This document shows positions 15,373-64,000 of a stretch of 64,000 nt of DNA, piece by piece (position 1 is the stretch's first letter; each line of letters starts with the position of its first letter). Origin of the DNA: Azolla caroliniana (Eukaryota; Plantae; Polypodiophyta); NCBI GenBank assembly GCA_043228905.1, contig JBHGNT010000001.1, positions 5,208,001-5,272,000 on the forward strand. Reading direction: 5' to 3'. The notes beneath the pieces were generated by a model. That model saw only the letters and a program-made list of their open reading frames with translations. It had not been told where the DNA came from and did no database searches. Both the position numbers and the translations under genes were made by a program.

Positions 15373-15444
15373 GCTCCTATAGCACAGTGGTAGTGCATCC
15401 GCCTTTTAAGCGAATTGTCGTGGGTTCGAACCCCACTGGGGGCA
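15373..15444 (+). tRNA. tRNA with anticodon TTT (nominally Lys-UUU), atypical Thr-like body; copy 1
   Basis: Full cloverleaf: GCTCCTA TA GCAC AGTGGTA GTGC A TCCGC CTTTTAA GCGAA TTGTC GTGGG TTCGAAC CCCAC TGGGGGC A. A and B boxes are intact, CAA lies just upstream and a TTTT terminator about 10 nt downstream. Confidence 0.92.
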
Positions 15445-16494
15445 TCCATAACTATTTTGTATAAAAATCCAAACAAAATGAGTCTCCTTGCATGTATATG
15501 TAACTTTATCATGCTGGATAAGTGTACAATAGCATTGAAGCAATTTCATTTTACATATCATCACGTCAACCTTTTATATTTGCTACATGACAAAACATTT
15601 GCAAAAGGGTCCCATGCAATAGTTTTTGGCATCTCCTGTTTTTAGCTTGATAATCGCCTTGAAAATTTGAAATTGAAATGCAACAACACCCCTACATTTG
15701 ATACGATATGTGTACAATGGAAGTGTTTTTGATTGATTAAGATATAGAAAATAATGGGAGGCAATAATCTTGACTAAGAAAAGAAAACCACCTACAATGC
15801 TTGGGAGTAAGACATTTACAGCCCTTAGGATATATACATGTCGAGTGACATTGTGACTCATATCCCTTTTCTATACAGGCTATACAGATTCATATTGCCA
15901 ATAAATAAAAAGCCTTTCTAAACTTCATATTTACACAGTCCTTAACAAAGGAATTTCATACAGTTCCATAAGTATGTGTTTATACCTTCACATATTAGAA
16001 TAAATGTAGTATACCGTAGGCACATCTTTATTTGTATCCAATAGTTTTAAGTTCATGGAGCAAATACAACTTGAGTAACTATAATATGGCAGTAGATCTG
16101 CCACATGAGTACTCATGTTACTTGCAGTATAAAGCATCAATCATTATTTGCATAGAAGTTATTATGAAATGTCTGGAGCTTACCTCCCATAGCATAACAT
16201 GTTTCACGGATTCAATTCTCACTAGGGGTATGTATGTCTCTCCTTGTTTATGGACTCGAACAATATGGTGTAATCCTAAATTGAGGTTACTGTATGTTTG
16301 CTTATAAACATGCAATATCTTTGCCAGCTGAGTATAAGACTACATATCAGAATAGTTTGAAGCCGTCATAACAAAACTCACCGAGATATCTATATATAAG
16401 GGTTAGCTTTGTTACATTTTACGACGCCAATATTTTAGAGGGTTCTGAATCAAAATTTGAATATGGAATGGAAGTGGCAAAATTTCAAGCTTGC

Positions 16495-16560
16495 ACCCTC
16501 TATTAGTACAGTAATAAGGCACCCTTGAAAATTGTTGTGGGTTCAATCCCTATTGGTGCT
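16495..16560 (+). pseudogene. Decayed copy of the same atypical tRNA
   Basis: ctctattagtacagtaataaggcaccc..aattgttgtgggttcaatccctattgg aligns with copy 1 (..aattgtcgtgggttcgaaccccactgg). It carries transitions and a deleted anticodon arm. Confidence 0.6.
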
Positions 16561-16949
16561 TAATAATGGTATTTGATATTCATTTGTAATATTGGTGCCT
16601 AGGGAAAACGTATTGGATGCCAGTCAAATAATTCAACTATTGGTAGGTTGGAAGTACAGTAAAGAGAACGAAACCTCAGAAAACAGGTCGTTAAGTTAAC
16701 CAAAAAAATTCCTAAAACAGGGTAACGTCATAGATGGAAGGTAAGAACTCATTCCAATGCTTCCGTAGCAAAAGTTCTGGGTGAAGCACTTACATGACTT
16801 TGGCATCTGTAGTGTGGTCAGACCATATCATAACCGCATAACATTGCGCCAATCATAGCATCCCAACTGTTACATTCACTGTTCCATTAGGCAGATCTCA
16901 TAGTAATATTCTGCTTTGCAATACATGAGGATAGAATCACCTCGTATAT

Positions 16950-17021
16950 GCTCCTGTAGCACAGTGGTAGTGCATCCGCCTTTTAAGCGAATTGTCGTGG
17001 GTTCGAACCCCACCGGGGGCA
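16950..17021 (+). tRNA. tRNA with anticodon TTT (nominally Lys-UUU), atypical Thr-like body; copy 2
   Basis: Identical to copy 1 except G7-C66 replaces A7-T66. It is followed by tagTTTT. Confidence 0.92.
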
Positions 17022-20000
17022 TAGTTTTAGATTCTTGACAAGTGGTGCAGTCTTCCAGTTTTATTTTTACTTTTTTAACTTCATGTCGCTATTTTCTTCT
17101 ACTTTTCCTTTATTACACTCAACTTTTTTCCTTTTTCTTTTTACTTTAAACCTTTTATAGTTTTACGTTTTAGTTCTAAACCTTCATCCCCTTCTTTTCT
17201 TCAACATTTTGCGTTTTTACTCTTTCTCGCTTCCTTCTGATTTTTTACTTTTTTGCATTTCCTTAATTCTTTATCACTTACTTTCTTCTGCCTTCTTCCT
17301 ATCTTTTTTAAGTCTCTTAGCTTTCTTGCTTCTATTTTTTACTTTTTTACTCTTCAAAAATCTTCTACTTCTCCTTTTTAGCTCTTTATCCCCTCGTTTC
17401 TACTGCTTCTGCTTTTTTGCTCTCCAAAATATTCTGTTTTTGCTTTTAACTTTATCTCTCTTATCACTCATTTCTTCTATTTGTTCTTCATATCTTTTTT
17501 TCTCTCTCTATTCGCACATGATCTTCAGATCTAAAAAAACTTTTTTCTCCAAACGAATCCATAAAATCTCTTAGCAAACTAACTCTCCCAAATGTTCTGT
17601 TTTAAAGTTTTAATTCTTCATCCCTTCCTTTGTCTTTTTGTCCTCCAAAAACTTCTGTTTTTGCTTTCAACTCTCTCTCTATGTATCACTCTTTTCTTCT
17701 ATTTTTTATCTTAAAAACAATTTTCCTACCATTTATCGTCCATACGACAATATATATATATATATATATATATATTCTCTCGCTCTCTATTCACATAGTA
17801 TCTGCATATTTTCAGATCTAAAAATAACATTTTGCGAAAAGGAATCTATAAAATCTTGAAAAAAAAGCAAAATCAAAAGAAATTAAGTCAGTGAAAAACC
17901 AACAGGAAGATCCATCATGTAATGCATTCATTAAGTAAAAAAACCTTTCTTTTCTACAATCACTTCGTTTCTTCATATTCATTGATCAAAATAAACAAAA
18001 TCAGGAAAAAGGACATCGTAAACCATAAAAACGAGCAAGAAATGGAGAATGATGCAAGCGCTAAAAGATTCAGATGTAGGAGAAGATAACTAACCTCTCT
18101 TCTTCCTGCCCGTCTTTCTGGAAGCAAACTTCTCATTCACAACGAAGATCGCGATAATTGAAAGATTGCATTTCTCAAGCAAGTTGGAAGGTTTTCTGGA
18201 TTCAAAGGATTGACTTTATCGCGTGAGTGAGTGAAAAACGTCGCTAACGCCCTGCACTACATGTTGTCAACAGTAAAAAAGCTGTCGTCTTTCTCTCTGC
18301 ATTGCGACCAGTTTGACAGATCTTCTTTCTTCTTCTTCTTCTTCTTCTTCTTCTTCTTCAGTGGTCACGCTGTCAAGACTGTTATGAGGCTTGCGGCGTT
18401 TTTGAAATTGTGGAAATTACTCCCCACTCTTCAAACTAATGAGGTATTTACCGTGATGCCCCTGGGACGGTTATGAAAGGTATGTACATTTATTATACAT
18501 ACATGGAAGACAACCCCTACGATCTACCACAACATAGCAATTGACTATAGGGCAAAAGTCTCGTGTGAAGTTATGGTTGATTATGCATGGAAGTCTTGTG
18601 TCCAATCATTGAGTCAATTTTGCGATTAGATGGTCAACATCCTCATTGTGAAACCACTTTTAAAATTTTAATATCTCTTGTGAATTTGCAATTGATAAAA
18701 AAAAGTAAGCATCATGTGAAGCAATGACCAATCATTAGTGTTATTTTAGGCTTTTTGGTAAACATATGTGTTGGTTACCATATGTTGGATAGTATATGTA
18801 GACATAATGTATGTAGCAATATTACTATGTAATTGTGGTTACCTTAGCAATGAAACAAATCTTGAAATATCGTGGAGTTCTCATAACATAGAGCATCTAT
18901 CACACAAGGTTATTATGAGCAATTTGATCATGATTCTCATTAAGTTAATATAGTCAATATGAATTATTTGTTGTTTACTTCTTTGTTTATCTATAATCAA
19001 GTTTCAAATGCAACCACGAGGTAACTCATTTCCATTAGTTAGTATGTTAGTGATCTCCATTTGATTGCATGTATAATCCCTAGTTGTTGTGACTTGGTCT
19101 TATAGTCATATCTTGAGTTGGAGCCCTAAAGTGTGACTATAAAGGTATGATATCATGTACGTATTTTCCACCAGGGGTTTAATTCAGCGGAGATAGGGTC
19201 TCTATATCTTCAAAGTTATTTAAAAGAGATAGGTGTTAACGTATTCCACAATAATTTAGTTGATTATGTATTGTTCCCACAGTAACCATGGATGGTTATG
19301 GTACACAAATTTGAATTAACTCATGTTGGTTGAAGCATAGAAGCCTCAATGAGTATCAAACACTTTTATCGTGACCCACTCGATACTATAAGGATACATG
19401 ATTATTGTCAAGAAATTTGAATTTGGTCATGAAGCTCGAAGCACAATTGCTTAAGGCTATGTAGAAGGCATGCCATAGAGCCATATGTGGTGGATAGTTT
19501 AATAACATACTTAATTTGTGCCAACAATAATGGTAAGGTAGAGACTAACGACAAAAAATGATTATTATGTTCGAACTAGTTTATTCAAGTACAATCAGAT
19601 AACGATGATATGAACAACATTTCCTATGAGGTTGAACAATGTGAGAAATACAATTATGTATGTACCTTTTGATGGCAAGCAAAGGTGAAAGTTACGAAGA
19701 AAACAGTTACAAGAGATGCTCAAAGGGAATAAGTAGGGCAAATGTATAAGGATATGGTCATTCCTTTGTTAAGGAACGACTAGGGTGGATGCAAGATAGT
19801 GATATAAGCCTCAATGAACAATAATGAGGACAAAGGCATAACCCTTCGGTGGTGGATAACATAATAGTGGTTGAAGAGGTAACACATCATTTGTTAAAAG
19901 AATAAAGTTGTTTGTCAAATAACTTCAAGCCATAATATGGCACATAATGCCCACATAGCATGATATGAGCTTACAAGGAAATGTATAATTCCTTGTTTGT

Positions 20001-21372
20001 GAAAATGCTTAGTTGCTTGGCTATATCATAATTTTGTCTCATAATCGTTCATTGGATTGTGTTGATCCTTTTCCATGAAAAAGTTGGGAGTTGTTTGATG
20101 CATCATTAACTGAGGAGATTTTAGTTGATAAACTACCAATGATAAATATTTAAGTCATAGTGGAAGTGGATCCATTAGAAAGTTGAGGTAAAATTTGCCA
20201 CTAGTTCTTTCAATTAGCAAACTCGATGAAATGAATTGCATATATTTATGCACATTCAAGAATATTCCAAGCCAAATATATTGACATTCATCCAAAGACG
20301 CTTCCAAGGAGGTAGATGCTTTGAGGTCAATATTAAATGCATATCGAAAACTCATATGACTTTATCGTAGCCGATAAGTAGCATTAGTCATCTTCATTGA
20401 GCAAAACCCAAAGATTGAGGTAGCAATAAAAGATACGTTGGAAGAAGAGAGGGTAGTGGGGGTAGTGATGTTAAATCACCTTTGGACAAGATAAGCCGAG
20501 TTAGGTTGGCAACTCATCGAAGATGGGTTGGTAGGGAGTTATATTCATGTGTTGCCCATCAAAATTTGTTAGCCTTCTCATTGTGAGGATTTTGGAAATT
20601 TACTTTTTGAAATGAAGAGTTATGGATATGTGCAAAGATGGTTGCAGTGGGAATAACTTATAGAGTGATGTGATCCTATGTTGCTCGAGAAGTAGAAAAT
20701 ATGTATGTATGTATAGAGGCACCTACTTCAATTCAAACCATTTGCCTTCAAAGCCAATCTTGAGTCTTCAAGGTATCTATCTTGTGTTCAATGCTTGCCT
20801 TGGTGCTATTGTATTCTTGATACATACATACATACATTTATACATATTATGTATATATATGTACAACCTCTTGCTTTCAAATGAGGAAGTGGGTATATGT
20901 CTTCATTCATCAAACGAGAAACCAAATTCGCTAATTATGATCCTAATTAGATATTGAGCTTGCAGTAATTAGGAAACCTCCGCAGGCTCCGATTACTTAC
21001 CAATTGTATTTCTTTAGAGGCGACTTTAAATCATACAAGCCGAATTAATCTAATGAAACATTAATTAGACATAGATTAAGCTAATAGAGTTAACTTTTAT
21101 TTTGACTATTAGGTTGATAACGCTAATGAATTCTCTAAATATAGGTACATGCATAATTAATCGTGATCGCGTGTGCTCTGTTGAAAATTTCAGGTGACTA
21201 GGAGCCTCAAGTTTGGGCAAAGATCATGGATAGATTTCTCCTCAGATCAGAATTTTTGATAAAGCATATGTATAATGTCAAAGTTTCCCAGCTTCCACCA
21301 TTCATACATATATGTATAATATGAAACACATGACTCAAGTGAGTCTTTTTATTATTAGAATAAAAGCAAATA

Positions 21373-21444
21373 TGCCCTCGGTGGGGTTCGAACCCACGAC
21401 AATTCGCTTAAAAGGCGGATGCACTACCGCTGTGCTACGAGAGC
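21373..21444 (-). tRNA. tRNA with anticodon TTT (nominally Lys-UUU), atypical Thr-like body; copy 3
   Basis: Reverse complement: GCTCTCG TA GCAC AGCGGTA GTGC A TCCGC CTTTTAA GCGAA TTGTC GTGGG TTCGAAC CCCAC CGAGGGC A. It is followed by tatttgcTTTT and has an AT-rich element about 30 nt upstream. Confidence 0.92.
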
Positions 21445-23187
21445 TTACTACTCAATACCGGGGGGATTTTATTTGTATACAATTATTACACTCCAAATAT
21501 ATATGTGGCTTGCAATACCACTAGCCATGCAAAATCGAAACACCGTATTCTCACGACTATAAATAGATTACTAGGAATTGATAGAAGCCCAACAAGTTAC
21601 AAAAAGAGGAATATGAAGAGGCTTTGGAGGAATTATTTTTATTCCTACACGATCATCAACAAGATGTCATAGAAGAATTGATTATGATGTCAAGAATGTG
21701 TGTGACACATGCATTACGAAGACAAGTTGAGACATTTTAAGATGTTGCACAAATGACATATATTTGTCCCCAAAGATGGATAATGCTATTAATGAAGGTT
21801 GTCATCACAACGTGGCATGTGGTATACTAGCTTGAAATAGAAGCATGGTTTGCGAAAGATGCCATGAACTTCTAAGCTAGCCATTTAGGAAGCTATAAAC
21901 AATCGCATATACGAGCTACAAAGAGAATTGCTAACAAGGACAATTTATTAATTAGTATGAAAGCATCGGTGGAGATAAAAGAAAATTCATGCTAGAATGC
22001 AAGATGGTGATTTGAGTTTCATGTATTTTAACAAAATGCTATTAGACAAACAAAACTTTACGCAATGATGGGTGAAGGCTCAACATTTGTACAATGACAA
22101 AAAAAAGGCAAAGAAGTGGGTACATATTCAAGACAAGCAAGTGTTAGCCACGGTAATCCCATGTTGTCTAATAGACGAAAGCATAGGACAAACAAAAACA
22201 GGTGGTAGCAAAATGGAAGGATATGAAATGCAAACTTGTCGCCTCGTATGCTTGCAAGATAAGCAACGTGCCAAAAGGACGAATGCACCTCATGCTCGAA
22301 TAATGGCAAATTCGGGAGGTAAATGGAACTTCATGTGCCTCGAGAATGGGCAAGAGATGGTGGACAAAAAGGGCGTGGCATCACTTATACGGAGGATAAG
22401 GCTTGAACAAACAAGCGAGCTAATTGGGATGCCCCAAGGTCCAACGGAGGAGACACTGACATGATCACGAGATGATGGTGTTCTACGGGAGTTGGAAAGG
22501 TAGTCTGAAACGTAGTGAGGGGGCCGAGGGGCTAGCACTATGACCTATATATGTGTGTACATAGCATAGCCTATAGGATGCCACAAGGTCCCATGGAGGA
22601 GGACATTGGTTGGGTTTGCTTCTTTTCTTTGTCCGTCGTCGTCAATGGTCATCATCATCGATGACGACACCCATTCCATTCCGTAGAGGGAGGAAAGAAG
22701 GAATTTCAAATTTCTTATTAGGAAGAACAAGCAAACAAAATAACTATTTAGTAGTAATAATATTAATAATAATAATGACTTTTCTTTTCACTCGTTCTTT
22801 CTCGCTCTCTCTTCTTCCTCCGCCATCCTCGTGTGCAGAAACAAAGAAGCGCTTTTATTTCTGTCTTGTCTTTTGTCTCTCTAGCCATGGCGGGAGCGAC
22901 GACTGCACCCTAAATTTCTCAGACGTAATATCTTCCTCTTTTCCTTTTTTCTTCATTCTTCTTCCTCCTCGAATCTCAAGGTTGCTTCTGGAAAACACAG
23001 AGATCACAAGATCGGCAGATGAGTGGAAGTTTGGAGATACTGCACGTAGAGAACGCAGAGATACAGTAGGAGTTCAAAGTAAGATAGAAGCACAGAAACG
23101 ATCAGAAGGTCGGAAAGTCAGAGAGATATAGGCAGAGGGAGAAGATCGGAGAGAAAGAGAAGATCATACTATATACCTGAGCGATTC

Positions 23188-26100
23188 ATGGTAATGGGGC
23201 TTGATTTTGAAGCTCTGGCAGATGCCACTTCTGGTGCGGTTGGAGGCGTTCTGAGTACATCCATACTTTACCCTCTCGACACCTGCAAGACCAAGTACCA
23301 AGCAGAATCTCGTCCAGGGAAGCTTCTCAAATACAGGTGAATAAAAAACTCACAGTTTTATTTCGTTCTTTTTGTACTTAAATCCCTCTTATCTCTATTT
23401 CTTTCGATCATTTCTTAGCTTGATTAAAAAAATTTCGTTTTTCACTATTTTCTTCCTTTCTCTTTCTCATAATTAATCTTCTTGTTTGAAAGATCATAAA
23501 TGCGCAAATAATCGATGTTCTGTTCTTTTCTCGTCTCTTGAAAGTATCTGTTACAAGTAAGGTGGAAACTTTTTCTGGTTCCACGATAGTAGATGGATTT
23601 TTCTCTTTTATTGCATTGTCATTGATCTTCATGAATGCATCTGTTCCTTAAATTCCACAGGATTCATCTTTTCTCTTGAAAATCTTGCATTGGAGACTGT
23701 AAATATATTGTTTTCCTTAAGTAGCTCGTCCTGTTCTCCATGTAACAAAACATATCCTCCTCTCTTTCTCTTGCTTTTTGCACCAAATTCTCTCTCTTTC
23801 CACCTCTTAAGTAGATACATTTTCCTCAACCTTACTGTCTGTATTTGATCATATTGAATTTGTGAAACATCTTATATGAAGTAAGTTGCGTTTACTTTCC
23901 TTTCATCGGCTAGGAAGACCCTATTTTATAGTCAAAATATCAAAGTGGAGAATTATTTTCTTGCCTTGTCTTTCACCATTGATCTTAATGAATGATTGTG
24001 TTGCAGATGAAATACAAACATTCTCTTAACTAGATTGCTTTTTTATCCTAATATGCGAATGAAATAAACAAACTATTCTCAAGGTTTCCGTTAATATTGC
24101 AGTATTTCTTCTCTGAGCCTTTCATTTTGTTGAAAGACTTTATTACAGACAAAATACAAATGTTTTACTTGAGCAGGTCACTTTTGCTTCACCTGAAACC
24201 ACATCTGAACAGGAAAAACTCACTTTTCTTTTTCCTCTCTTCCCATGCTTTGCCTTTTAAAGACCGTAGTGCTTACAAAATGCAATAATTTTTCCAAAGT
24301 AGGACTTTTTTCTCCTTCTCTTTGCCTTTGATCTTCTTGAAAGTTGTGCAATAGAAATTATAGAAATATTGTTCTTTAAGGAGATCACTTGTTTACTGTC
24401 TGTTCTACATTCAAGCATAACCTTTATACTTTACTTATTTTCTTGTATTTCCCTCCTTATCATCAAATGAATGTGCTACAAGAAAACTACCAACAATTTT
24501 CATAAGTAGGTCACTTGTTTTTATGAACGATTTCCATTAGTAGATTGTATGCTTCTACATAAGGTTGTCCATGCAAGTAAGTTTTTCTTCTTCGTGTTTG
24601 TTCATACAAAATACCTTTGCCAATCGTTTTTCTGATGTTGTGGAAGCACTATATGTTAGAGATAATATTCACGAAATATTTTGTTTATTGGTTCACATGT
24701 TTACTTGCATTACTCAATGTTTTTAACTAGGACTCCGGTCGATGTCTTGAAAGAGGCTCTCAAATCTAATCAATTACTCTCCCTATACCAAGGACTTGGT
24801 GCAAAGACTTTGCAGTCATTTATTTCACAGTTCATATATTTCTATAGCTATAGCTATATAAAAAACATTTATTTGCTAAAGAGCAAGAGAAGAAAAATGG
24901 GAACAGGTGCGAACCTCCTGGTTGCAGCAGCAGCAGGTGCTTGCACAGCTGTCATTACACAGGTAGCAATATGCATCTTTTTCTAAAATCTCTACATGTA
25001 TTCTAAGGCTCATGAAATCAGTCTGTGCTAGCCTGTTCAAAATAGAGCAGAATTCTATCTTTAATTTGATTGGGTTCATGTGTGAAAAACGTGTACAAGC
25101 ATGCTGGCCCTATATATACTCAGATGCATAGGTAGATACGTGGATGGATGGATGGATGTATTTCAATTATCGTTCTGGGATATTAAGTCAACCTAGGGTG
25201 AGAGAGCTTCATTTTCCATAATTCTTGCTGCTGAGTATTATATACCATAAGCTTATTGTGTATCCTTATTTGTTATCATCCAAGTTGGTTTGTGCTATAG
25301 GTCTAGGTTTCACACTTGCAGGAAGATAACTTATGCCACTTGCACATGCAGATTATTATAGGTTCACTTTACAGATATGGAGATTAAAGGATTAAGGCAA
25401 CACCTCGATCTTCAAAAAAGTCAAGTGGAAGTGTTCCACTGGCTGTCTGTGTAAATGTATGAAACTTTATTACAAGGAGATCCATTATATTAGCATCACA
25501 TTGTATTGTGCATGATAAAGACAAAGTCATCAAGTTTAAACACACAATTGAAGTTGCATAAAAACATGACTGCTTTTTATGGACAAGAACATGGTAATTA
25601 TACTATTGTATTTATTTTATGTTTTTCTATGTTACATATGGATATGTAATGGAATTCTGCAGAATGCTTTTGAGGATGGTTTGGGTTATGCTAGGTAAAA
25701 TTCACAACAGTTCCTATCAACTTTCCAATTGGGATCTGGGCTGTTTCACTCTTCATGATTTATTTAGGTTTGCACTTTGTCACTAAACGTTTCATCTTTG
25801 CTTTCCTAAGGATTAACATTTCATGCTATTAAAATTGATCTTCTTTTGAATATGTCAAGAGTATTTCCTGTTACGACCTAGACCAAATATTTTAGATGCT
25901 CAAATTGGAACTTCATGCTGTTTCACACCATTAATCCTTTTAAGAAATAGGTTTTCTAATTCAATCAATAAAAAACAAAAGAATTTTCTACAATAACTCC
26001 GTGTCTCTTTAAGTAGCTTTCTAGGTTCCAATGATCAAATGATCATCTTGAATGTGGCTGGAGATCTTTTAAATATTTTATACATTAAAGCCTGTTATTT

Positions 26101-27765
26101 GCCTGTTATTTGCCTGTTGTGAGTATTCCAAAAAGGTGCAACCAGTATCCATATTATTTCACATGCTTACTCTGTCTGTGGCTACCTAGTTTCCAAGTTT
26201 CTCAGTAAAATAGATATGACATTTTAAGACACGTATTAATAATTAAGCTAATATGTAGACCAAACACATTAAGATTTTGCTACTTTGAACTAGTTCCAAT
26301 TTAACTTGGTTACTGGATAGAAAGATACAGAAATAGAAAGCAAGGATGGCAAAAGTCAGATAATGTAGGCATATAATCGATCCAAAATATATGAATCAAC
26401 AAAAAGGATGATAGAATATAACATCCATATTTTCTTTTTCCAAGAGATGAGGAGATGAGTTATCTTAGCGTGCTTTCATTTTTGCATGGTAGGTGTAATG
26501 AGCCTTATGTTCTAAATGGGGACTTGTTTGGTAATCTTTTGTTATACCTTTCTTTGTATGTTAATATGAGTACTAGATCATTTGACCATCTTTATTGTAT
26601 GCATGCTGGAGTCTATGTTGCAGAAGTGTATACTTACATTCATTTATCTCTGCAGCCCTTGGATACAGCTTCAGCTCGAATGCAAACAAGTTCGTTTGGC
26701 AACTCACAGGGATTGTGTGAAACCTTAAAGACTGGAGACTGGACACAAGCTTTTGATGGTCTCGGAGCATCCCTCATATTAGTATCGAATCCTGCTGTCA
26801 ATGTATACAAATTTGATAGATTTATCAAAAGTTATTTTTCACATAGTGAAATCTCCAAAACATCCCTTTGTTCTTTATTATTTCCATAAATATGCTCTGA
26901 TTTTCTTTATTCCCCTAAATCCCCTTGGTCCACACCCCCAAAAGAAAGCACAAGTAAATGTATCTTTGAGCAATTAACATCGGCAGTTCATATTCTCCTT
27001 AATCATGTGGTAATTATATATGAGGAAAGATATAGGTGAATTGATCCCTTTCTGTTTCTTCTGGGGTTTGACCAAGGATGTTTAGGGGGGAAATTCAGCC
27101 AGTAGGGGAAATAAAGAAAAACCTGGAGCTTTTTCTGAGTTTTTCCTTCATTTCACTATCATGATTTCATTTCTTGATATGGCATCATGAATATTGGCAG
27201 TACACAGTTTTCGAACAGTTAAAGAATCAACTGCTCAGCAATCAGAGACGAGAAATAAGAAGTCTAGAGGGTTCTCCAGTTGTATTATCAGCTTTATCTG
27301 CTTTTCTATTAGGAGCTTTGTCTAAAACTATAGCCACAGTTGTAACATACCCAGCTATAAGGTAACACGAATATCCCTTGTAAAACATCATGCATGCATC
27401 AAGATATACATGTGTATACATATATAGTTAAGTGGAACATAAAGCGTTCTCTTATTTTTGGCAGGTGCAAAATTCTCCTACAGGTTGATGAAGAAGACAA
27501 ACAAGATAGAGATATAGATGGTAATCGGAATGTTGAATGTGTAAGAAGTTCAAAACCCAGGGGTATTGTGGATGCGATAAACATTGTATGGCATAGAGAA
27601 GGAGCATTTGGGTTCTATAAAGGCTTAGAAGCACAAATCCTGAAAACAGTTTTGAGTGCTGCCTTGATGTTGATGATTAAAGAGAAGACATCTAAAATTA
27701 CATGGCTCCTGCTGATGGCTTTTAGGAGATGGTTGACCCCGACTCCTAAGAGGCTAATAAGGTGA
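23188..27765 (+). CDS. PNC1: Peroxisomal adenine nucleotide carrier (PNC1/PNC2-like, mitochondrial carrier family), about 329 aa
   Basis: Exons 23188-23336, 24731-24962, 26656-26802, 27201-27361 and 27465-27765 join in frame. Motifs include [66 protein letters not shown] and [24 protein letters not shown]. Confidence 0.95.
26895..27130. mobile_element. Imperfect foldback / MITE-like element in PNC intron 3
   Basis: The left arm gctctgattttctttattcccctaaatccccttggtccacacccc pairs imperfectly with the right arm ggggtttgaccaaggatgtttagggg...ggggaaataaagaaaaacctggagc. A similar right arm occurs at about 54895-54970. Confidence 0.55.
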
Positions 27766-52326: not shown

Positions 52327-55300
52327 ATGATGGAGCTTCCGTGGAAGTCTAGGGCTAAAAGCCCATCGAAGGAGACTTCTTCATCTTGTATCAGCTTTTC
52401 ATACATTTCACAGCTAAGGAGCCATAACTCGGATGACCTTCAGACCTCTCAATTGCATATTAACGAGGATCTGATTTCTTTCACATGGGTCTCTTCCTCT
52501 AACGTAAAAGTTAGAGTTAATGATAATAAGACAGATATGCAAGGGAACTCTTGTTCATCTTCGTCGATAATTTCAAAGAAATTGATCCATGAAGAAGCTC
52601 GTCACAACCCTCTTCTTCAACCATTAGCTTCATTGGCTAGCTCTTTGGAAGCTATGTTTGTAAAGAGCAAAAGTGTTAAAGCAAAACAGAAAGTTCAGAA
52701 TGGACGAGCTTTATTTTGTTGCCTGGGGTTAGGTGGAAGACAAATCGATAAACTGAATCTGTCTCAAGCTGAATCTGTTTATATTCCAGAAGGCCAAAGC
52801 AATGAGAAAACTATGCTTGATGCTCAATTTCATCACAATGAGGAGGAGTCCAAGACAAGCATCGAGTCAGAAAAGCAACAAGTCAATAAGGTTGCAATGC
52901 ATGAATCAGCATTTGTCACTGTAAAACATCTTTCTGCCGGTGCTTTATCTGCAATCGTGTCGAGGTTTGTTTTCTCCTCCTAAAACTCAAAATGAAGTTT
53001 GAGAGAGAGAGAGTGAGAGTGAGAGTGAAAGTGATGTAGTAATCATGTCTCGAAAGGTACAACCATCATATATTACATGAAATAAGTCTAAAACTTAAAA
53101 TGAAGTTTGAGAGAGAGAGAGAGAGAGTGAGACTGATGTGGTATTCATGTCTCCAGAGGTACAACCATTGTCTAATTCATGAAACATGTACAAGATCTAA
53201 TATGTAGAGATGTAGGGGAAGTTCAATGGTGTTTAGCTTAGTTCCCAAATGTACCATGAGGTCCTGAGGGACACCTAATGTGTTTATTTCCACACACAAA
53301 TACACATGCCTGATATTGCTTTCCTAATATCAACACAACACCAAATGCTGGACTATGGCTTCAATATCCTTTATTTGTATCCAGTTGATTGAGGTATTGT
53401 TAATTGTGTTAAGACTGAATTGTAAAGTCTGAAGCTATTTGTATAAATTTAGGCATGTAAATTTAGGCTATTTGTTGGACATATAATGCCAACAGGATGT
53501 GAGTAAGTGTATGTATAAGTGCCTCTAGGACAAACTTCCTAGGTATGAGCAGCTTACATGTCGAAAAGAAAAAGGGGGATAGGGATGAAATGAAGGTATA
53601 TTAATTTATTCAAAAGGTAAAAGTGACCTAGTAGTTAGAAGTATGATCGAGAGCTCTCTTGAAATATGCATGTATAAGTGTATCCAGGCTGCCAGCAGCA
53701 TACAGACTTGCTAGGTATGAGCAGCTGACGAGTAAAAGAAAAAAAGAGGGATAAAGATGAATTGAAATATTGTGTTATAATATCAAATGCTACATTCATG
53801 TGAAACTTATAGAATGTCTTTTAAAATGAAGCTGAATTAGATTTTACCAAAATTAGGTTGCTATCTTTATTTGATTGCAAGGATGTAAACAAAGCTCAAC
53901 AACGTAGATAGTTATAACGGGAAATTTAGACCAGGAGCAGGTGCACCCAACGAGAGATTACAAGTGACAACGTTCTCTTGTCTATAGGAACGAAATATAC
54001 AAAATTAATAATCTTCCTGAAATAGGCCGTGTAAAAGTCTTCCTAATAGAGCAACATCTGAAGTTTGCTGAATAATGAAATTGAGATCAGTGCTATTTAA
54101 AGATAGCCAAATAGTCTGTCTGAACCTCAGTTCATGATGGAAATATTTCCAAAGCAAGGAAACTCACTCCAATGTGGAGGGATGATGGCATTGATTTGGA
54201 ATATAAGTTTATCAAGGCTGAATTTATTTCTGTATCAGTATACACTGGTGCTACGTATACATGAATGAGAGACATTTTCAATATCAACAAATAGAATGAA
54301 TCCTTGAGAATAAAAGATTTCAAGAGTCAAAGCCAAATTATCTTTGTCTAAACTATTCCAAGGTTGAGTAGGACATGAGAAGAAGTAGGCTTCTATGGAG
54401 AGATAAGTTGTAACACCATAGCATCTTTTTGAATAACCGCGATGTCCTTGTAGGTCATTTGTAGCTCCGTTGGAAAGGCTGAAACTGGAGTACATGGTTC
54501 GTGGTGCTCGTCAAAATGTAATACGAATTATAGAGCTGATTATATTGAATGAAGGAATACGAGGATTCTGGAGAGGAAATGTTGTAAATTTGTTGCGAAC
54601 GGCACCTTTCAAAGCTGTCAACTTTTTCTGTTATGATGTTTATAGAAGAAGGCTGCTTGAGATTACAGGGAAAGAAGAAGCAAGCAATTTTGAAAGACTT
54701 ATTGCTGGTGCAGCTGCTGGAATTTCAGCCACATTACTTTGTTTCCCCATGGATACAGTAAGCATCTAACTAAGTGTAATTCTTATTCTTGTTTTTTCCC
54801 AAACAATTTTATCTATTATTTGAGCAACTGTATGGTCAATTTCGCAACCATTTGAGCAACTGTCAACTGTATGCACTATTTGAACAATTATACAGTGAAT
54901 TCATCCTCCCATCCTCTCTTTTGGGGGTTATCCAGGGGCATTTTAGGAAATAAATAAAATATCGGAGGACATTGGAGTTCTCCCTTTTATTTATAGTCTC
55001 AAAGACCTTTTCTTCTTTGTATGAATGAGATATCACCGTATGATTGTAACATTTTTGAGTCTCATTCTTTATTTTTCCCTTTTAGGCTTCTTCTAGCTTT
55101 AACTCTAACACATACGGCAACGTATAACTTATGTATGGTATTTATAAACATTGTCACCGAAGAAAAGAAATTTATTATGACATTCTTTAGTTTTGTTTAT
55201 GTTTGCTTATAATGAGATCATCTAACACATCTTTAACTTGTAGATACGAACTAGAATGGTTGCTCCAGGTGGGGAGGCTTTGGGAGGTGTAATTAGCTGC

Positions 55301-57393
55301 TTTCAACATATGGTTCATACAGAAGGATTCTTTTCTTTGTATAAGGGTTTATGGCCAGCAGTAATAAGCATGGCTCCCTCTGGAGCAGTCTTTTATGGAG
55401 TATATGACATCTTAAAGACAACATATCTTCATTCTCCAGAGGGTCAGGAAGATCTTAGGAAGAGAATTGAGATGGAGAGAAGGCGGCGTAGAATTGAAGA
55501 GAATTTACCAACTGATAATTTATCTGAAGAAAGCCTCAAAACTAAGACACTCATTGAGCTAAAGGAAGATGCGGGAAATCTTGGACAACTTGAACTAGGA
55601 CCCATAAGGACCCTTGTATATGGAGCAATAGCAGGAATATGTGCAGAGACATCAACTTATCCATTTGAAGTTATTCGACGGCAAATGCAAATGCAAACTG
55701 CAGCTACAAAAATGGGAGCGTTTGCAACTTGTCGATGTGTATTCCAAAGAGGTGGCATTGGTGCCTTGTATTCAGGATTGCTTCCAAGCGCACTTCAGGT
55801 TAACGATTGGTTCTTTTGTTTTTGGTTTCTATTCTACTTTGTTTTATTTGCTGCCTTTGCCTTTCATGTTTTAAAAAGGACAAGTGGCCATATCATGACT
55901 GATAACAGTTCCCTTCATTGATTTAACCAAAGTTCAATGCTAAGGATATGGTATATGATCCCATATGTGGTTGCATGAATCCTAACACTGATTGTTTGAA
56001 TGAAGCTCTAAGGACATAGCTTTGTAGCAGTTTTATAAAACTTCTGGGTAGTCTCCTTCAGATGGGCCAACATTTGTTACTGTACAGTTACAGTAGATTC
56101 TGAAGATACGATACCTAAATCTGTGGCAGAATATAGGTGTTTCTAGAGTTCCACTGTGCATCCTCTGACGATTCAATAGCACCTTTTTGTTTTTATCAAA
56201 ATGTTCAGAATATTTCTGGGTAACTACATTAGGAGCCACCCTGGAGGAATGTATGCAAGCCTTCCCCGCCAACTAGGGAGCACAGGGCTGTTTCCAAATC
56301 CTCTGAAGCTACATTTTTAGGGGTTTATATGCATCTCATCTTGGTTGGCCTTAGCGTGAGTATAGTGTTGAGAATGGGCATAAAACATGCTACTAACCTA
56401 TTTTTCCTATTAAACTGATTCTGTGTGTCCTTGGTTCTATTAAACACCCTTTGTACCAACAGAAGAGGTCGTCTTATAATACTCTTTTTGGGTCCCATAG
56501 ATCATGTTTCTGGCATTTGGAAGACATTAAAATATCATCATCATCATCACGTCCCCCATCCCAAATAGAAACAACAAATGCTGGGATCTGATAGGTCAGC
56601 CTAGCTCGGTATGATTGCATCAATTCATGCCCCCTATGCTCTACTAGAAAAAAGAATATCTCATGTTTTGAAAATGAGATGAAACCTTTCATGTTCTCGG
56701 GCCTCCAAATGAATCGTCAGTTAATGTATGTTTTGAAACTTTGAAACTTTTCAGGATGCTGAGTAACTTACAGGTCATGTTTCTGGCATTTGGAAGACAT
56801 TAAAATATCATCTTCATCATCCCCCCCCCCACCCCCCCACCCCAAATAGAAACAGCAAATGCTCGGATCTGATAGGTCGGCCTAGCTCAGTACGATTGCA
56901 TCACTTCATGCCCGCTATGCCCTAGTAGAAAAAAGAGTATCTCATGTTTTGAAAATTAGATCAAACCTTTCATGTTCTCGTGCCTCCAACTGAATTGACA
57001 GTTATTGTATGTTTTGAAACTTTTCAGGGATGTACTTACATGTAAATGCATGCACGTTAATGTCTTTAGTTAGATATGTATGTAAATGTGGAATATCTAT
57101 GCATGTAAATGTGTTTTTGGTATCTAGTGATGTGTGAAGATAGTTATGTAAATGTATTTAGATATGAAATATATTATCTAAAATTTTGTTACTCTTAGTG
57201 ATTTATACGCAATTTACCTACTTGTACATGTACTGTTTTGTTATGAATTCTATAGGCATGTTATATGGGTATGTGTGTGTTTTATTTTTTTACTCATAGA
57301 ACTTGAGATCTTACTCATCTGCAGGTCTTACCTTCAGCAGCAATCAGCTACTTCGTCTATGAGTGTATGAAGATAATTCTAAAAGTTCCGTAG
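52327..57393 (+). CDS. BTL3: Mitochondrial carrier family protein, BTL2/BTL3-like (Brittle1-like adenine nucleotide transporter), about 521 aa
   Basis: Exons 52327-52964, 54454-54757, 55244-55798 and 57325-57393 join in frame. Motifs are KHLSAGALSAIVSRSFVAPLERLKLEY, LRTAPFKAVNF, PMDTIRTRMVAPGGEALGG, DILKTTYLHSPEG, QLELGPIRTL and LQVLPSAAISYFVYE. Confidence 0.92.
52982..53190. repeat. Tandem duplication of about 108 bp containing (GA)n in BTL3 intron 1
   Basis: aaaact.aaaatgaagtttgagagag...catgtctc..aggtacaaccat occurs twice. A second duplicated pair lies at about 53510 and 53670. Confidence 0.75.
56502..57028. repeat. Tandem duplication of a unit of about 273 bp in BTL3 intron 3
   Basis: tcatgtttctggcatttggaagacattaaaatatcatc occurs at 56502 and 56775, with high identity to the end of the unit. 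Confidence 0.92.
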
Positions 57394-60194: not shown

Positions 60195-63100
60195 TTAACT
60201 GCAGTCTTGACTGCGTAATGCTTGGTTTTCTGGATCAACAACAATGTCACACGTCACCTTGCCCTACAAAACACAACTCTCTCTCTCACTCTCTCTCACC
60301 ATTACACATATTCAATATCCGAGTACATTAGTAATAAAGCTAGTTATCTTTCTCTCTCCCTAGTGTCATGCAGTGGTAAAACATCTATGTTGTGGAATGT
60401 CATGGGTTTTGAGTCCTAACATCTACAGTGTCTTTGTTGCATAGAAAAAAACCTAATGAAATCCACACTTACCAATGACCTCTCCGATAAGACTCTGTCG
60501 TAACATTTTGTATCAAGGGTCATAAACATCATATAAAATTTTCCAGATGGAGAAGAGAGCGTGCCTTGTCCATAGAAGTGTGCAAAGGGCCAAAAAGTAT
60601 TAGTCAGATAATGACCTCACCCCTGCCCAAGATACTCAAGGAACACACGCCAAGAGTACTTGAGGAAGTGCCCATCACTGAGCGCAAGTCTTTGTGACAG
60701 AGATTGGACCTAGTCAAAATGTATGAAGATGATTTCTTGATACTTGGGACTGCACGAGGCAGCATTCTAGCCATTCGGAGAGGCAATATTAACAGACATT
60801 GAATATTCTGAGAGGCAATATTAACAGGTTGATGATAATCTAGCTCTGTTAGGATGGACAATATTTCAGAGGACTAATTTAGAAAGTGCAACAAATTTGG
60901 ATTAGGCCTGAGGATGTACATAAGATTGCACCTATTAACTTTTGATCCCTATAAATTTTGGCAATGCCTCCCGGACTTCTGCCACTTTCAATACGATTGT
61001 GGAGTTTTTCACCTGACAGGAACTTTGAGGGCCTATTTGTCAATGACAGTATAATGTGGAGAATGAATATAACCACAACGACCATTTGGCCAAGATTTTC
61101 AATTATCACCATAAAACGGATTACTTAATAACGCTAAAAAAAGTGAATTCTTGGAAGAGATACATTTCCCTGGCAAGATGACATTACATCAGCAATGTGA
61201 ATGGCCAACGGTCGATGATCTTTCGACGAGAGAAGACAAGGCCAATATATCCAGGATCAGCATGGACGAATTAGCAGTGGGTTCTGATGAGTGTATCTAA
61301 AAGTAAAGCCGTGTCCTATCAAGTCACTTTAGGTTAGGCCCTACATAAATTCAGGTAAAGTTATAAAGGCATGGGCAAAGACATTTTTTGAGGAGGTGAC
61401 ACTTGGCAACATGAGCAAGGATCAATTTACTCAAACTAACCTCATTCGATGTAGAACTCGAAATTCAACTTTCGAGCTAATCCGGGGTCATTTTAGAGTG
61501 CATAACTTGCTCTCTTCTTTACTATCCAAGAGTACCTAGGTAGGTCTACGTACAAACTTTATTTGCAGAAATAGACTTAAACAGTTGCCTGTATTTTTAA
61601 GGTTAGGGCTCTATTTTACTATTCTTTTCTATTACCTACCAATAAAGAAAGACCAGAAGTGGATCCAGTGTTTGGGGCCAATAGATACCAACTTCCTTAT
61701 TCGGGAGAAGTCCAGCTTCATATATGTGAAATTGATGCTTCATGAATCCAAGATCTTGAAGTGTTTCTTCAATTATATAAGATATCTCTAAGGTGAAATT
61801 TCAGAGCTAAATTAGCGGTTCAATGAATGGTTTAGTGCCCTCGCCATTGCCCAATCCTTCCTCAAAGCCAATGAGCTAAATGTGAATGTTTTAATTGGAA
61901 CAATATGCATGTATGATTTCTTTCCATTACATCACTGATGGAATTTTACATACATACTAATAATGAAGGAACACATCTAAATGGATAAAAAGGTCTCAAA
62001 TCTTGGGCATTCCAGCCCAATTTGCCTCTATATAGTTTCCAGAGCTCTTCTCACCTGGTTCATTAACAAGAACTATTAACTAACTTACATAATGAAACAA
62101 TATGTATATATGATTTATTTCCATTATATCACAAAGGTGATTTTGCCTTATATGTGATTTCTAAATAAAGGAAGGGATATGTCTCAGGGGTTCCAAGCCT
62201 ATTTGCCTCTATAGAATTTCTAGAGCTCTTCCATACTGGTTCACTACACCCACCACCAAAAAATAAGAATTGTGGAAACCATATGATGATGATGGCGATG
62301 ATGAAGAAAAGGCTAAAAGTCTCATTTTTAATGTCCTCTCGATTTTCTCTACAGAACAAATACAGCATTATTTGATAGTTCATGAGGATTGAAGGACAGT
62401 TCATGGGGACTGCCACAATGGGAAGTATAGCAAACAAAAAGCTATGGCCCAACCCTTCCACTCTCATAATGAAGTTATAAAATAGATAACTTCCATTTGA
62501 TTTCTTATCATTATGATTTTCTTTCCATTATTTGACCTTCAAAGAATTTATTTTTGTGTAAAACCTCCTACTAAAGAAGAAAAGAATTGGATAAAAACAC
62601 ATACAAAAATGTAAGGGATCTGTACCTACCTCAACAGGCAACTGGAACCAAATTACATCAATATATCCATCGAACACTGAAACAATTTGCAAAGGCACTA
62701 AACCTTTGGCAATATCGACAATCAATGCAGACACGTTATTCAGGATCTGATACCCATCTATTTCAAGACTCGCACTGACAGTTGATGTCTGAAAAGCTTC
62801 AATTAAACCGCCAGCAGACTCCTCTGGCTCATCAATCTCGTCTCCTTGGAAAAGAACACTTGTAACCACATTATCATACTCAAATGTGAAATAATTAGGA
62901 TTTCGTGCTCGAAGGCTCAGATCTATGTCTAGGTCAATTGAGACTGAAGGTTCTTTATCAATTGAGAATTTGACTTTTTGAATGTCTATGTTAACGCGTA
63001 ATGTTTCGATGGAGCGAGGCCAGATGAAGAACCCAATGATGCCTCCGAAAAGGATTAAGAACAAAAGGGAACACGCGAAGCTCCTGATACATGCTCTGCA

Positions 63101-63355
63101 TCTCCATCTTCTTCGTATTCTCTCCGGAGAATACGAAAGGGAAGGAAATGGTGGTGGAGGAGGTCCAGAGGGTAAGAAAGCATATACTGGTTGTCCTTCA
63201 ACTGTTTCACGGATCACAGGGTAGCCAATGATGAGAGGGCCTTCTTCATCTCCATCTCCATCTCCATCTCCATCTCTACCTTCGGCGAGCCGTCTTCTTC
63301 TTCCTTCTTCTTCATCGTCTAGTCCTTGTTGATGTATAGGGAGACGCGATGCCAT
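60195..63355 (-). CDS. LEA_2 domain / NDR1-HIN1-like membrane protein, about 264 aa
   Basis: Exon 1 (63355-62630) has a Pro-rich stretch, a basic and Cys cluster, a TM helix ending FFIWP and the LEA_2 motif RNPNYFTFEY, with donor GAG|GTAGGT. Exon 2 (60263-60195) encodes GKVTCDIVVDPENQALRSQDCS*, the conserved C-terminal Cys pair. Confidence 0.9.
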
Positions 63356-64000
63356 GGATGTCAATCTTTCCTTTGTGCTCTCTCTTTCTCTCTCTCGGGT
63401 ACTCTAAAGTTTACTAGAGAGCCATCCGGCAAATGCTCTGTTTCTGATGCTCTCTCTCTCTCTCTCTCTGTTCATGAGTTTTACACTTGAGGAGTCAGTC
63501 CTAAGGAAAGACCAACCTCTTATGGGCGAGAAGCCGCATTCGGGATTCCCCCGACAATGTCCCATTTTGTTCGCATTATGGCACAACCTCATTGGCCGTA
63601 ACCATATGAAAAAAGAAGAACTTCGGGACCGCCCCCTCACTCTCTCTAGTCACCGATCAGAAATCCATCCCGATTTCGCACAAATATGTCTTTCTTCCAT
63701 CACGAATAATTTTACTCCGTCTATTCTTTGCTCCTTTGGTTAACCGTACCCATCTTGTAAACACAACAAAACTCCAACCAAAGGCTACGTTCTGATGTGA
63801 GTACTCACGTAGGAAATCCATGTTTGGTGTGGGTCAAAGTAATTGGGGGTGGACCACTTCCACATTGATGTGGTCCTTGAGGTAAACAATCTACGGTCTT
63901 AACTAAATGAACATTCCACGATCTAACATAATGAACACTCCAAGCTTACACTAACTTGGAACCAATTTGTGTATCACAACTCATTGGGTCTAGGATGAAT

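Follow-up and report, generated by a model that had tools for sequence, protein, structure and literature searches.

Three tRNA Genes With the Anticodon UUU

The window, that is, the whole 64-kb stretch of DNA that was analysed, contains three tRNA genes, all called as tRNA-Lys(ttt) by ARAGORN, and no other tRNA was called in it (Table 1). The genes, cloverleaves with 7/4/5/5-bp stems, matched Rfam RF00005 with 63.4–63.6 bits (gathering score, 29 bits) over model positions 1–71 of 71. Direct reading gave the anticodon loop CT-TTT-AA, the anticodon stem TCCGC/GCGAA, and the discriminator A73 in all three, with the D arm TAGCACAG[T/C]GGTAGTGC and the Pol III boxes TAGCACAGTGG (A box) and GGTTCGAACCC (B box). 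These results confirmed the earlier note, which had described three intact 72-nt genes with this loop, Pol III boxes, and T4 runs. Body motifs of 20–24 nt were confined to the three gene sites in the window, and shuffled sequence gave none. An upstream CAA motif was found at some copies only.

Table 1. The tRNA genes of the window and the T runs that follow them.
Feature	Position	Strand	Details	Evidence
tRNA gene 1	15373..15444	+	72 nt; anticodon TTT at 15405-15407; acceptor GCTCCTA/TGGGGGC; A73	ARAGORN; Rfam RF00005, 63.5 bits
T4 run of gene 1	15455..15458	+	10 nt past the gene; read as Pol III terminator; kept in ortholog L043	sequence
tRNA gene 2	16950..17021	+	72 nt; anticodon TTT at 16982-16984; acceptor GCTCCTG/CGGGGGC; A73	ARAGORN; Rfam RF00005, 63.6 bits
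T4 run of gene 2	17025..17028	+	3 nt past the gene; read as Pol III terminator	sequence
tRNA gene 3	21373..21444	-	72 nt; anticodon TTT at 21410-21412; acceptor GCTCTCG/CGAGGGC; C16; A73	ARAGORN; Rfam RF00005, 63.4 bits
T4 run of gene 3	21362..21365	-	7 nt past the gene, with a T3 run abutting the gene; read as Pol III terminator	sequence

The universal tRNA residues U8, A14, G18-G19, U33, and purine 37 are all kept in the three genes, as are the G53-U54-U55-C56-purine57-A58 run and C61 of the T arm, and the minimum-free-energy fold was a cloverleaf for each of them. The proportion of paired cells in the stem alignment was 95%, and the sole unpaired pair was 28:42, a C28.A42 mismatch that is invariant across the family and weakens the anticodon stem. 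This mismatch had escaped the earlier note, as had the Lys-matching variable loop and T arm and the U73 of plant Thr-CGT described below.

Copy Number and Conservation in Related Genomes

The contig or unitig depth of the family was 198–266 compared with about 45 for single-copy sequence, which corresponds to roughly 4–6 copies per genome. The earlier description of the gene as amplified was overstated, since the depth suggests about six copies. The similarity between paralogs ends at the gene borders, with 76–80 nt in common, and the family is not SINE-like because its copies have no common flanks or tails. A tRNA-derived SINE or a pseudogene was also considered, and was ruled against by the intact fold, the end of similarity at the borders, and the number of copies.

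The ortholog of gene 1 (L043:657-728) shows a single difference in 72 positions. Three orthologs of gene 2 (L072, L033, and L027) are identical to it and another (L017) differs at one position of 72, while L043:2150-2216 has decayed by a deletion that took 5 nt from the T stem. The orthologs of gene 3 (L038 and L070) each differ at one of 72 positions. Compared with the 0–1 differences in 72 positions of the syntenic tRNA orthologs, the flanks diverged by 6.6, 7.9, and 14.6% and contained many indels (binomial P = 0.043, 0.0026, and 0.00016, respectively), and substitutions were about 12 times fewer in the genes than in the flanks. Moreover, the stem changes among the seven distinct sequences all preserved pairing (5:68 C-G/U-A, 7:66 G-C/A-U/G-U, and 6:67 U-G/C-G), and the anticodon was TTT in all 11 intact copies. 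The low divergence of the genes beside diverged flanks, together with these pair-preserving changes, indicates that the three genes and the copies in relatives are selected genes under purifying selection and not decaying copies.

A non-translational locus, be it a silent copy, a repeat derived from a tRNA, or a producer of small tRNA fragments, would agree with the C28.A42 mismatch, which reduces the stable pairs of the anticodon stem to three in the predicted fold, with the decayed ortholog, and with the presence of the CAA motif at part of the copies. We consider it very improbable, as the full cloverleaf, the universal positions, and both promoter boxes are intact, the changes are exclusively pair-preserving and rare relative to the flanks, and the copy number is low.

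Comparison With Plant tRNA-Thr(CGU) and tRNA-Lys

The family was compared with 79 retrieved land-plant Thr-CGT genes, all with the CGT anticodon, and with Lys, Thr-AGT, and Thr-TGT references that come from one plant family, the Caryophyllaceae, and not from the Azolla genome. In published plant nuclear sequences (PMC8662596, supplementary file 2), Thr-CGT reads TAGCATAGTGGTA[G/T]TGC and has the anticodon stem TTCGC/GCGAA, and Lys-TTT starts with GCCGTCT and has the D stem GCTC/GAGC, the anticodon stem CGTGG/CCACG or CATGG/CCATG, and G73. The plant Lys-UUU and Thr(CGU) sequences given in the earlier note agree with these.

The D arm with its A12-U23 pair, the acceptor pairs G1-C72 and C2-G71, and nine of the ten anticodon-stem bases are common to the family and plant Thr(CGU). 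Among the sequences examined, the A12-U23 pair occurred in no functional isotype beyond Thr(CGU) and the family. Furthermore, each of the three 3′ acceptor strands in Table 1 was found among Thr-CGT variants. The differences from plant Thr(CGU) are the anticodon (UUU versus CGU), by which G35 is absent from the family, the C4-G69 pair, which is U4.G69 without exception in the retrieved Thr(CGU) genes, and C13, A26, C28, C32, U44, U45, and G52-C62. The discriminator differs as well: A73 had been listed as a Thr(CGU)-like trait, whereas plant Thr-CGT has U73 with one exception. At ten positions, of which two lie in the anticodon, the family departs from all 79 Thr-CGT genes, so the anticodon change is not recent, contrary to the suggestion of a newly recruited tRNA. 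Some Thr-CGT genes have the T stem GTGAG/CTCAC, from which one compensated pair change gives that of the family. In addition, over the acceptor stem and discriminator gene 3 agrees with plant Thr-AGT at 14 of 15 positions, A73 among them.

The anticodon loop CUUUUAA is the same in the family and in plant Lys, and 15–16 of the 17 T-arm positions and four of the five variable-loop positions are also as in Lys. However, plant cytosolic Lys tRNAs have G73, only one of five anticodon-stem pairs is common to both, and the D-stem 12:23 pair is A-U in the family and U-A in Lys. The acceptor stem is unlike the GCCGTCT of Lys, with four of seven pairs in common in gene 3.

Isotype Profiles and Phylogeny

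With Thr, Lys, and Arg-CCG as the only computed isotype references, the anticodon-masked genes scored 45–50 bits on the land-plant Thr(CGU) profile versus 30–33 bits on the plant Lys profile, and the cross-isotype background of such scores was 8–26 bits. Other Thr isoacceptors reached only 23–26 bits on the Thr(CGU) profile. True Lys tRNAs scored 75–82 bits on the Lys profile, which bears out the statement that the body is unlike canonical plant Lys-UUU; the best profile was that of Thr(CGU), whereas a best score on Lys was the outcome that the earlier note had named as refuting its reading. Its description of the body as Thr(CGU)-like stood for the profile scores, the A12-U23 pair, and the anticodon stem, but not for C32, the variable loop, and the T arm, which are Lys-like. 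Sequence identity by itself would not point to Thr specifically, since Arg-CCT is identical to the family at about 52 of 70 positions (hand count).

When the variable loop and T arm were removed, the genes scored 31–38 bits on Thr-CGT (true moss Thr-CGT, 43 bits) and did not match the Lys profile. The variable loop and T arm alone scored 17.6 bits on Lys versus 4.7 bits, with true Lys at 21.1 bits. On the same Lys segment Arg-CCG scored 13.7 and moss Thr-CGT 14.2 bits, which marks the Lys-like variable loop and T arm as a common, generic type. Outside this segment, 15 of the 18 discriminating sites match Thr-CGT. The ratio of Thr- to Lys-matching sites was 15:3 outside positions 44–65 and 0:5 inside (Fisher p = 0.0017, which is too small because paired sites are not independent, and for which the boundaries were chosen post hoc). 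By its sequence, the body is a mosaic, in which Thr(CGU)-like acceptor, D, and anticodon stems are combined with a Lys-like anticodon loop, variable loop, and T arm. The profiles and discriminating sites, but not the maximum-likelihood tree, place it nearer to another isotype than to that of its anticodon, as an alloacceptor shift requires.

The Lys-like T arm and variable loop make a chimeric origin or descent from Lys possible. A chimera would have arisen by gene conversion or recombination of Thr(CGU) and Lys genes rather than by point mutation, and would function as a tRNA-Lys isodecoder. The sharp partition of sites and the region-wise profile scores concur with it, but the Lys-like positions 32–38 and 44–65 flank a Thr-like 3′ strand of the anticodon stem, so that at least four exchange points would be needed, and the single compensated change from the GTGAG/CTCAC stem of some Thr-CGT genes would suffice for the T stem. 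We therefore regard a chimera as improbable.

In the maximum-likelihood tree, the canonical Lys tRNAs formed a clade with a support of 100/97 and the family lay outside it, its origin not being resolved by the tree. An AU test did not reject a clade of the family and Lys (p 0.575), and the likelihood of the forced tree was slightly above that of the free-search tree. A divergent ordinary tRNA-Lys(UUU) isodecoder, always lysine-charged, whose acceptor, D, and anticodon stems drifted to a chance likeness to Thr(CGU), would fit this test, the identical anticodon loop, the T arm (16/17) and variable loop (4/5) with their score close to that of true Lys, and the nearly equal hand count of events (17 changes from Thr-CGT versus 19 from Lys). 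It is nevertheless unlikely in view of the absence of any Lys match once the generic variable loop and T arm are left aside, the Thr-CGT-like 12:23 pair, the single Lys-like pair in the anticodon stem, the loss of G73 that it implies, and the exclusion of the family from the Lys clade. The proposal that a Thr gene changed its anticodon is in turn favored by the affinity to the Thr(CGU) profile, while the tree lacks resolution and none of the syntenic orthologs retrieved carried a Thr anticodon, TTT being present at all eight related loci (on L017, L027, L033, L038, L043, L070, and L072).

Proposed Origin and Function

That the genes are transcribed, that their product accepts lysine, and that the shift ran from Thr to Lys are inferences. 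The genes are probably nuclear Pol III genes of a small, one-lineage family derived from Thr(CGU), and their product a tRNA-Lys(UUU) isodecoder that carries lysine. The ancestral gene, of the Thr(CGU) type, would have changed its anticodon from CGU to UUU, probably via UGU, and the change of U32 to C32 would have given it the same anticodon loop as plant Lys-UUU. The molecule may then have taken on a Lys-like variable loop and T stem, the wobble U4.G69 may have turned into C4-G69 with the gain of a U3.G70 wobble, U73 into A73, and U28 into C28, which would have left the C28.A42 mismatch behind. The product would serve as an extra tRNA-Lys isodecoder that reads AAA and, by wobble, AAG.

The UUU anticodon alone confers lysine identity in the human LysRS system, and human tRNA-Asp or initiator tRNA-Met switch to lysine identity when given UUU (reviewed in PMC9976931). 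As in these engineered transplants, UUU sits here on a foreign body, although they are laboratory constructs used with human LysRS and the present family is a natural, selected plant family known from its sequence. Since the identity of eukaryotic class II LysRS substrates comes mainly from UUU and ThrRS depends on G35, lysine is the most probable amino acid on the product, a prediction that rests on human LysRS data (PMC9976931), from which plant LysRS rules may differ. The A73, in place of the G73 of plant cytosolic Lys tRNAs, speaks against lysine charging. Among the three functions put forward in the earlier note, namely a recruited tRNA-Lys, a Thr-charged mistranslator, and a non-translational RNA, the first appears best supported, and the most likely function is that of a tRNA-Lys(UUU) isodecoder that bears lysine and was recruited from among the Thr(CGU) genes.

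Double or threonine identity would mean that ThrRS charges the product via G1-C72, C2-G71, and A73 and that threonine enters at AAA at a low level, constantly or under regulation. The acceptor end is Thr-like, down to the resemblance of gene 3 to Thr-AGT; acceptor pairs count among the identity elements for threonine, and in yeast A73 plays a role (PMC9976931); and ambiguous intermediates after anticodon shifts are proposed by Rogers and Griffiths-Jones (2014, PMC3923123). However, anticodon nucleotides belong to every threonine identity set studied (PMC9976931) and G35 is lost, as is the conserved U4.G69, UUU by itself gives lysine identity in the human system, and several copies under purifying selection are hard to square with proteome-wide Lys-to-Thr errors. 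We give this possibility a low probability. A lysine tRNA directed to an organelle, imported and charged by an organellar LysRS, e.g., where the mitochondrial trnK has been lost, would have only a very slight chance of being correct. Cytosolic Thr tRNAs are imported into the mitochondria of angiosperms, and a Silene study found Thr-CGT enriched in mitochondrial fractions (PMC8662596), so that a Thr(CGU)-type body may already suit import. The lysine identity set of the bacterial type consists of UUU plus A73 (PMC9976931), and A73 is also found in the plastid and mitochondrial trnK sequences examined (PMC8662596 supplement).

Synteny has revealed alloacceptor anticodon shifts in primates, flies, nematodes, and yeasts, and shifts from Asn to Lys have arisen repeatedly in animals with hardly any additional changes or none (PMC3923123); lysine is a recurrent target there because LysRS reads the anticodon. 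As in those shifts, a body of one isotype carries the anticodon of another, with added changes elsewhere. Unlike in those shifts, the ancestral anticodon was not seen at the syntenic locus, and the family is a conserved multi-copy one in which ten differences from Thr-CGT are fixed and the T arm is Lys-like. Plants are not mentioned in that paper, and Thr-to-Lys is not among the shifts in the passages considered; in the literature we found no report of an amino-acid-changing anticodon shift in a plant nuclear genome, while such shifts are known in animals and fungi. The family would represent a naturally occurring tRNA whose amino acid has apparently changed and which is kept under selection in related genomes.

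Three tRNA Genes with a UUU Anticodon

The three UUU-anticodon tRNA genes proposed in the earlier note were borne out by both ARAGORN and the Rfam tRNA model (gathering score 29). ARAGORN typed each as tRNA-Lys(ttt) and called no other tRNA gene in the 64 kb. As read from the sequence, each is 72 nt long, with stems of 7/4/5/5 bp, a D loop of 7 nt, the anticodon loop CTTTTAA, a variable loop of 5 nt and the discriminator A73. Promoter boxes were present (A box TAGCACAGTGG, B box GGTTCGAACCC), and T4 runs lay 3-10 nt downstream. Body motifs of 20-24 nt occurred in the window at these genes only, and a permissive Rfam search (E-value up to 1) found no further tRNA-like remnants in 10-27 kb of the window. 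Genes 1-3 are very likely functional tRNAs.

The window is plant nuclear DNA, with a G+C content of 34-40% and exons for LEA_2 and mitochondrial carriers. An organellar origin of the tRNA genes was rejected, as the plastid and mitochondrial trnK sequences compared were unlike genes 1-3.

Features located in the window
Feature	Position	Strand	Remarks
tRNA-Lys(ttt) gene 1	15373-15444	+	ARAGORN; Rfam tRNA model 63.5 bits, full length
tRNA-Lys(ttt) gene 2	16950-17021	+	ARAGORN; Rfam tRNA model 63.6 bits, full length
(TTC)n microsatellite	18323-18360		Accounts for the extreme contig depth of bins 18088-18409
tRNA-Lys(ttt) gene 3	21373-21444	-	ARAGORN; Rfam tRNA model 63.4 bits, full length
Mitochondrial-carrier-family exons	24681-27765	+	Motifs resembling the peroxisomal carrier type
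Second Mito_carr ORF	55256-55921		
LEA_2 (NHL-type) ORF	62528-63364	-	

Sequencing run X6, which we guess to be RNA, gave contigs of depth 3-12 over positions 16800-17765 and none over 18410 to 21600. These contigs may reflect a Pol II transcript across or beside gene 2. Since they include the flanks of this gene, the run is silent on mature tRNA.

Copies, Relatives and Selection

Genes 1-3 were mutually alike over 76-80 nt only, that is, the gene and a few bases, and differed among themselves at positions 5, 6, 7, 16, 66, and 68. In an alignment of 11 copies of the family (7 distinct sequences), all stem changes preserved pairing, with C-G or U-A at 5:68, G-C, A-U or G-U at 7:66, and U-G or C-G at 6:67.

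JGI/ENA metagenome contigs were scanned once with a pattern that admits Thr-CGT or the UUU family with any anticodon. The scan returned eight loci of the UUU family and 79 Thr-CGT genes of plants ranging from mosses to angiosperms. All eight family loci came from one assembly series of low coverage (ERZ10343xx and ERZ10344xx), which suggests host-plant DNA. Seven of them were syntenic with the window: L043 with genes 1 and 2, L017, L027, L033, and L072 with gene 2, and L038 and L070 with gene 3. The remaining one, L050, is a fourth family locus with unrelated flanks. The orthologous tRNA genes differed from the window genes at 0-1 of 72 positions, compared to 6.6, 7.9, and 14.6% divergence and many indels in the aligned flanks (gene-versus-flank binomial P = 0.043, 0.0026, and 0.00016 in three independent gene comparisons). 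The UUU family genes are under purifying selection in related plant genomes.

In L043, the ortholog of gene 2 (L043:2150-2216, matching window 16950-17021) carries a 5-nt deletion that takes out the 3' T-stem strand, beside an intact ortholog of gene 1. It is a recent pseudogene inside the cluster of one related genome or haplotype, and the family copies are therefore partly redundant. The region was also present in Logan contigs of organisms A, B, and D. Logan unitig depth was 198-266 for the tRNA body versus about 45 for the single-copy flanks, suggesting a family size of roughly 4-6 copies per genome. An indel polymorphism of about 1.7-2.6 kb adjoins gene 3 within window 18800-21372 between relatives; contigs of organism B skip 18800-21372 and 19388-21091, and in L038 sequence near 18822 runs straight into that near 21184. 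No UUU-family members were found in the Caryophyllaceae reference tRNA sets, and the single match of the D-arm string among the papers searched was an unrelated one from Trypanosoma cruzi.

Isotype of the tRNA Body

The references for Lys, Thr-AGT, and Thr-TGT were Caryophyllaceae nuclear tRNAs (PMC8662596, supplementary file 2) rather than Azolla's own, and the canonical plant Lys-UUU and Thr-CGU sequences described in the earlier note match that file. Identity of the family outside the anticodon was 50-54/69 to Thr-CGT, 48-52/71 to Thr-AGT, 48-50/70 to Lys-CTT, and 46-49/69 to Lys-TTT. This span of just 67-78% gives a ranking too flat to assign the isotype of the body. By hand count Arg-CCT also shared about 52/70 positions with the family, so a raw identity close to 75% does not mark Thr in particular. 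In a maximum-likelihood tree of 69 columns, with the anticodon columns left out, canonical Lys formed a clade at 100/97 without the family, and the branching of the family, Thr-CGT, Thr-AGT, and Thr-TGT was not resolved. AU tests rejected neither the grouping of the family with Lys (p 0.575) nor that with Thr-CGT.

Profile scoring is more informative on this point than raw identity and the tree. Anticodon-masked Thr-CGT and Lys profiles were used as a small-scale stand-in for isotype-specific models, and Thr-CGT, Thr-AGT, Thr-TGT, Lys, and Arg-CCG were scored on them. With three training sequences per class the order was unchanged, the whole family gene scoring 40-46 bits (Thr-CGT) versus 30-31 bits (Lys). 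In the variable loop and T arm, the Lys profile also gave 13.7 bits to Arg-CCG and 14.2 bits to moss Thr-CGT, so the T-arm type of the family is generic.

Scores (bits) on the anticodon-masked profiles
Sequences and segment	Thr-CGT profile	Lys profile
Family, whole gene	45-50	30-33
True Thr-CGT	79.5-84	16-21
True Lys	8-19	75-82
Thr-AGT and Thr-TGT	23-26	about 25
Arg-CCG	11.5	14.3
Family without variable loop and T arm (3+3 training)	31-38	no hit
Moss Thr-CGT without variable loop and T arm	43	no hit
Family, variable loop and T arm only	4.7	17.6
True Lys, variable loop and T arm only	8.7	21.1

At the sites where the Thr-CGT consensus and Lys-TTT differ, the family sided with Thr 15:3 outside positions 44-65 and with Lys 5:0 inside them (Fisher p = 0.0017, which is overstated because the boundaries were picked post hoc and paired sites are not independent). 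Together with the region-wise profile scores, these sites indicate that the body is, on its sequence, a mosaic of Thr(CGU)-type and Lys-type parts. The Thr(CGU)-like body described in the earlier note thus held for the acceptor, D, and anticodon stems, including the A12-U23 pair and 9 of the 10 anticodon-stem bases, and did not extend to the anticodon loop (C32, UUU), the variable loop, and the T arm, which resemble plant Lys.

The family was unlike all 79 Thr-CGT genes at positions 4, 13, 28, 32, 34, 35, 44, 45, 52, and 62, with one exception each at 26 and 73, and usually at 59. The U4.G69 wobble invariant in Thr-CGT is replaced by C4-G69 along with a new U3.G70, and U73 by A73. Where Thr-CGT has U28 the family has C28, giving a C28.A42 mismatch in every copy that leaves just three anticodon-stem pairs in the predicted fold. 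The metagenome scan returned no intermediates, no CGT on the family body and no TTT on a Thr body.

Two further tRNA-like loci were observed. The metagenome locus L053 holds a plant Thr-CGT variant with A73 (L053:281-352), compared to the otherwise universal U73, and the adjoining copy is degraded and was called Thr(ggt) by ARAGORN. A contig of sequencing run X1 (3452 nt, depth 179, about four times single-copy depth) carries a different tRNA-like gene with 10 mismatches to family body positions 8-62 (window 16957-17011), an apparent acceptor GCCACCA/TGCTGGC and T73; organisms B and D have this gene as well. As a guess, it may be the Azolla genome's own Thr-CGT type.

Proposed Origin and Function

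Lysine identity rests on the anticodon, and in a human system UUU moved into tRNA-Asp or initiator tRNA-Met suffices for lysylation, while threonine identity involves anticodon nucleotides and acceptor-stem pairs (PMC9976931). Eukaryotic nuclear genomes are known to undergo anticodon shifts that change the amino acid, with lysine repeatedly the target (PMC3923123). In the route proposed here, a Thr(CGU)-type gene would have gained the UUU anticodon, probably via UGU, which takes one synonymous and one identity-changing step. The resulting tRNA would then have been taken over by LysRS and remodelled. Because Thr and Lys tRNAs both read ANN codons and share U36-A37-A38, the anticodon-loop context would have been compatible beforehand. 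The Lys-like T stem could have arisen from gene conversion by a Lys gene or by convergence, the latter speculatively through elongation-factor binding tuned to the new amino acid.

Among the roles considered in the earlier note was a Thr-charged mistranslator; a harmful one is disfavoured by the long retention of several copies. If expressed, the family tRNAs would probably carry lysine. We hold their derivation from Thr-CGT with slightly less confidence, and the combined reading of a functional, lysine-charged tRNA from a Thr(CGU)-type gene is favoured only moderately.

This kind of event, an amino-acid-changing anticodon shift, is known already, and such shifts reveal routes by which tRNA identity and the genetic code may change. 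No plant nuclear anticodon shift and no Thr-to-Lys shift was found in the papers searched. Most known nuclear cases are single genes in animals or yeasts whose activity is not established, whereas the putatively shifted gene here is a small family under purifying selection in related plant genomes. What is unusual in this family is its conserved multi-copy state, its mosaic body and its defined accompanying changes. For annotation pipelines, the anticodon will give a Lys call, and the isotype score may get such genes flagged or dropped. To our knowledge, the identity rules of ThrRS and LysRS have not yet been worked out in plants. The set of accompanying changes (C32, C4-G69 plus U3.G70, A73, C28.A42, and the Lys-like T stem) gives a basis for asking which of them a plant tRNA needs to pass from the class IIa enzyme ThrRS to the class IIb enzyme LysRS and still cause no mistranslation.
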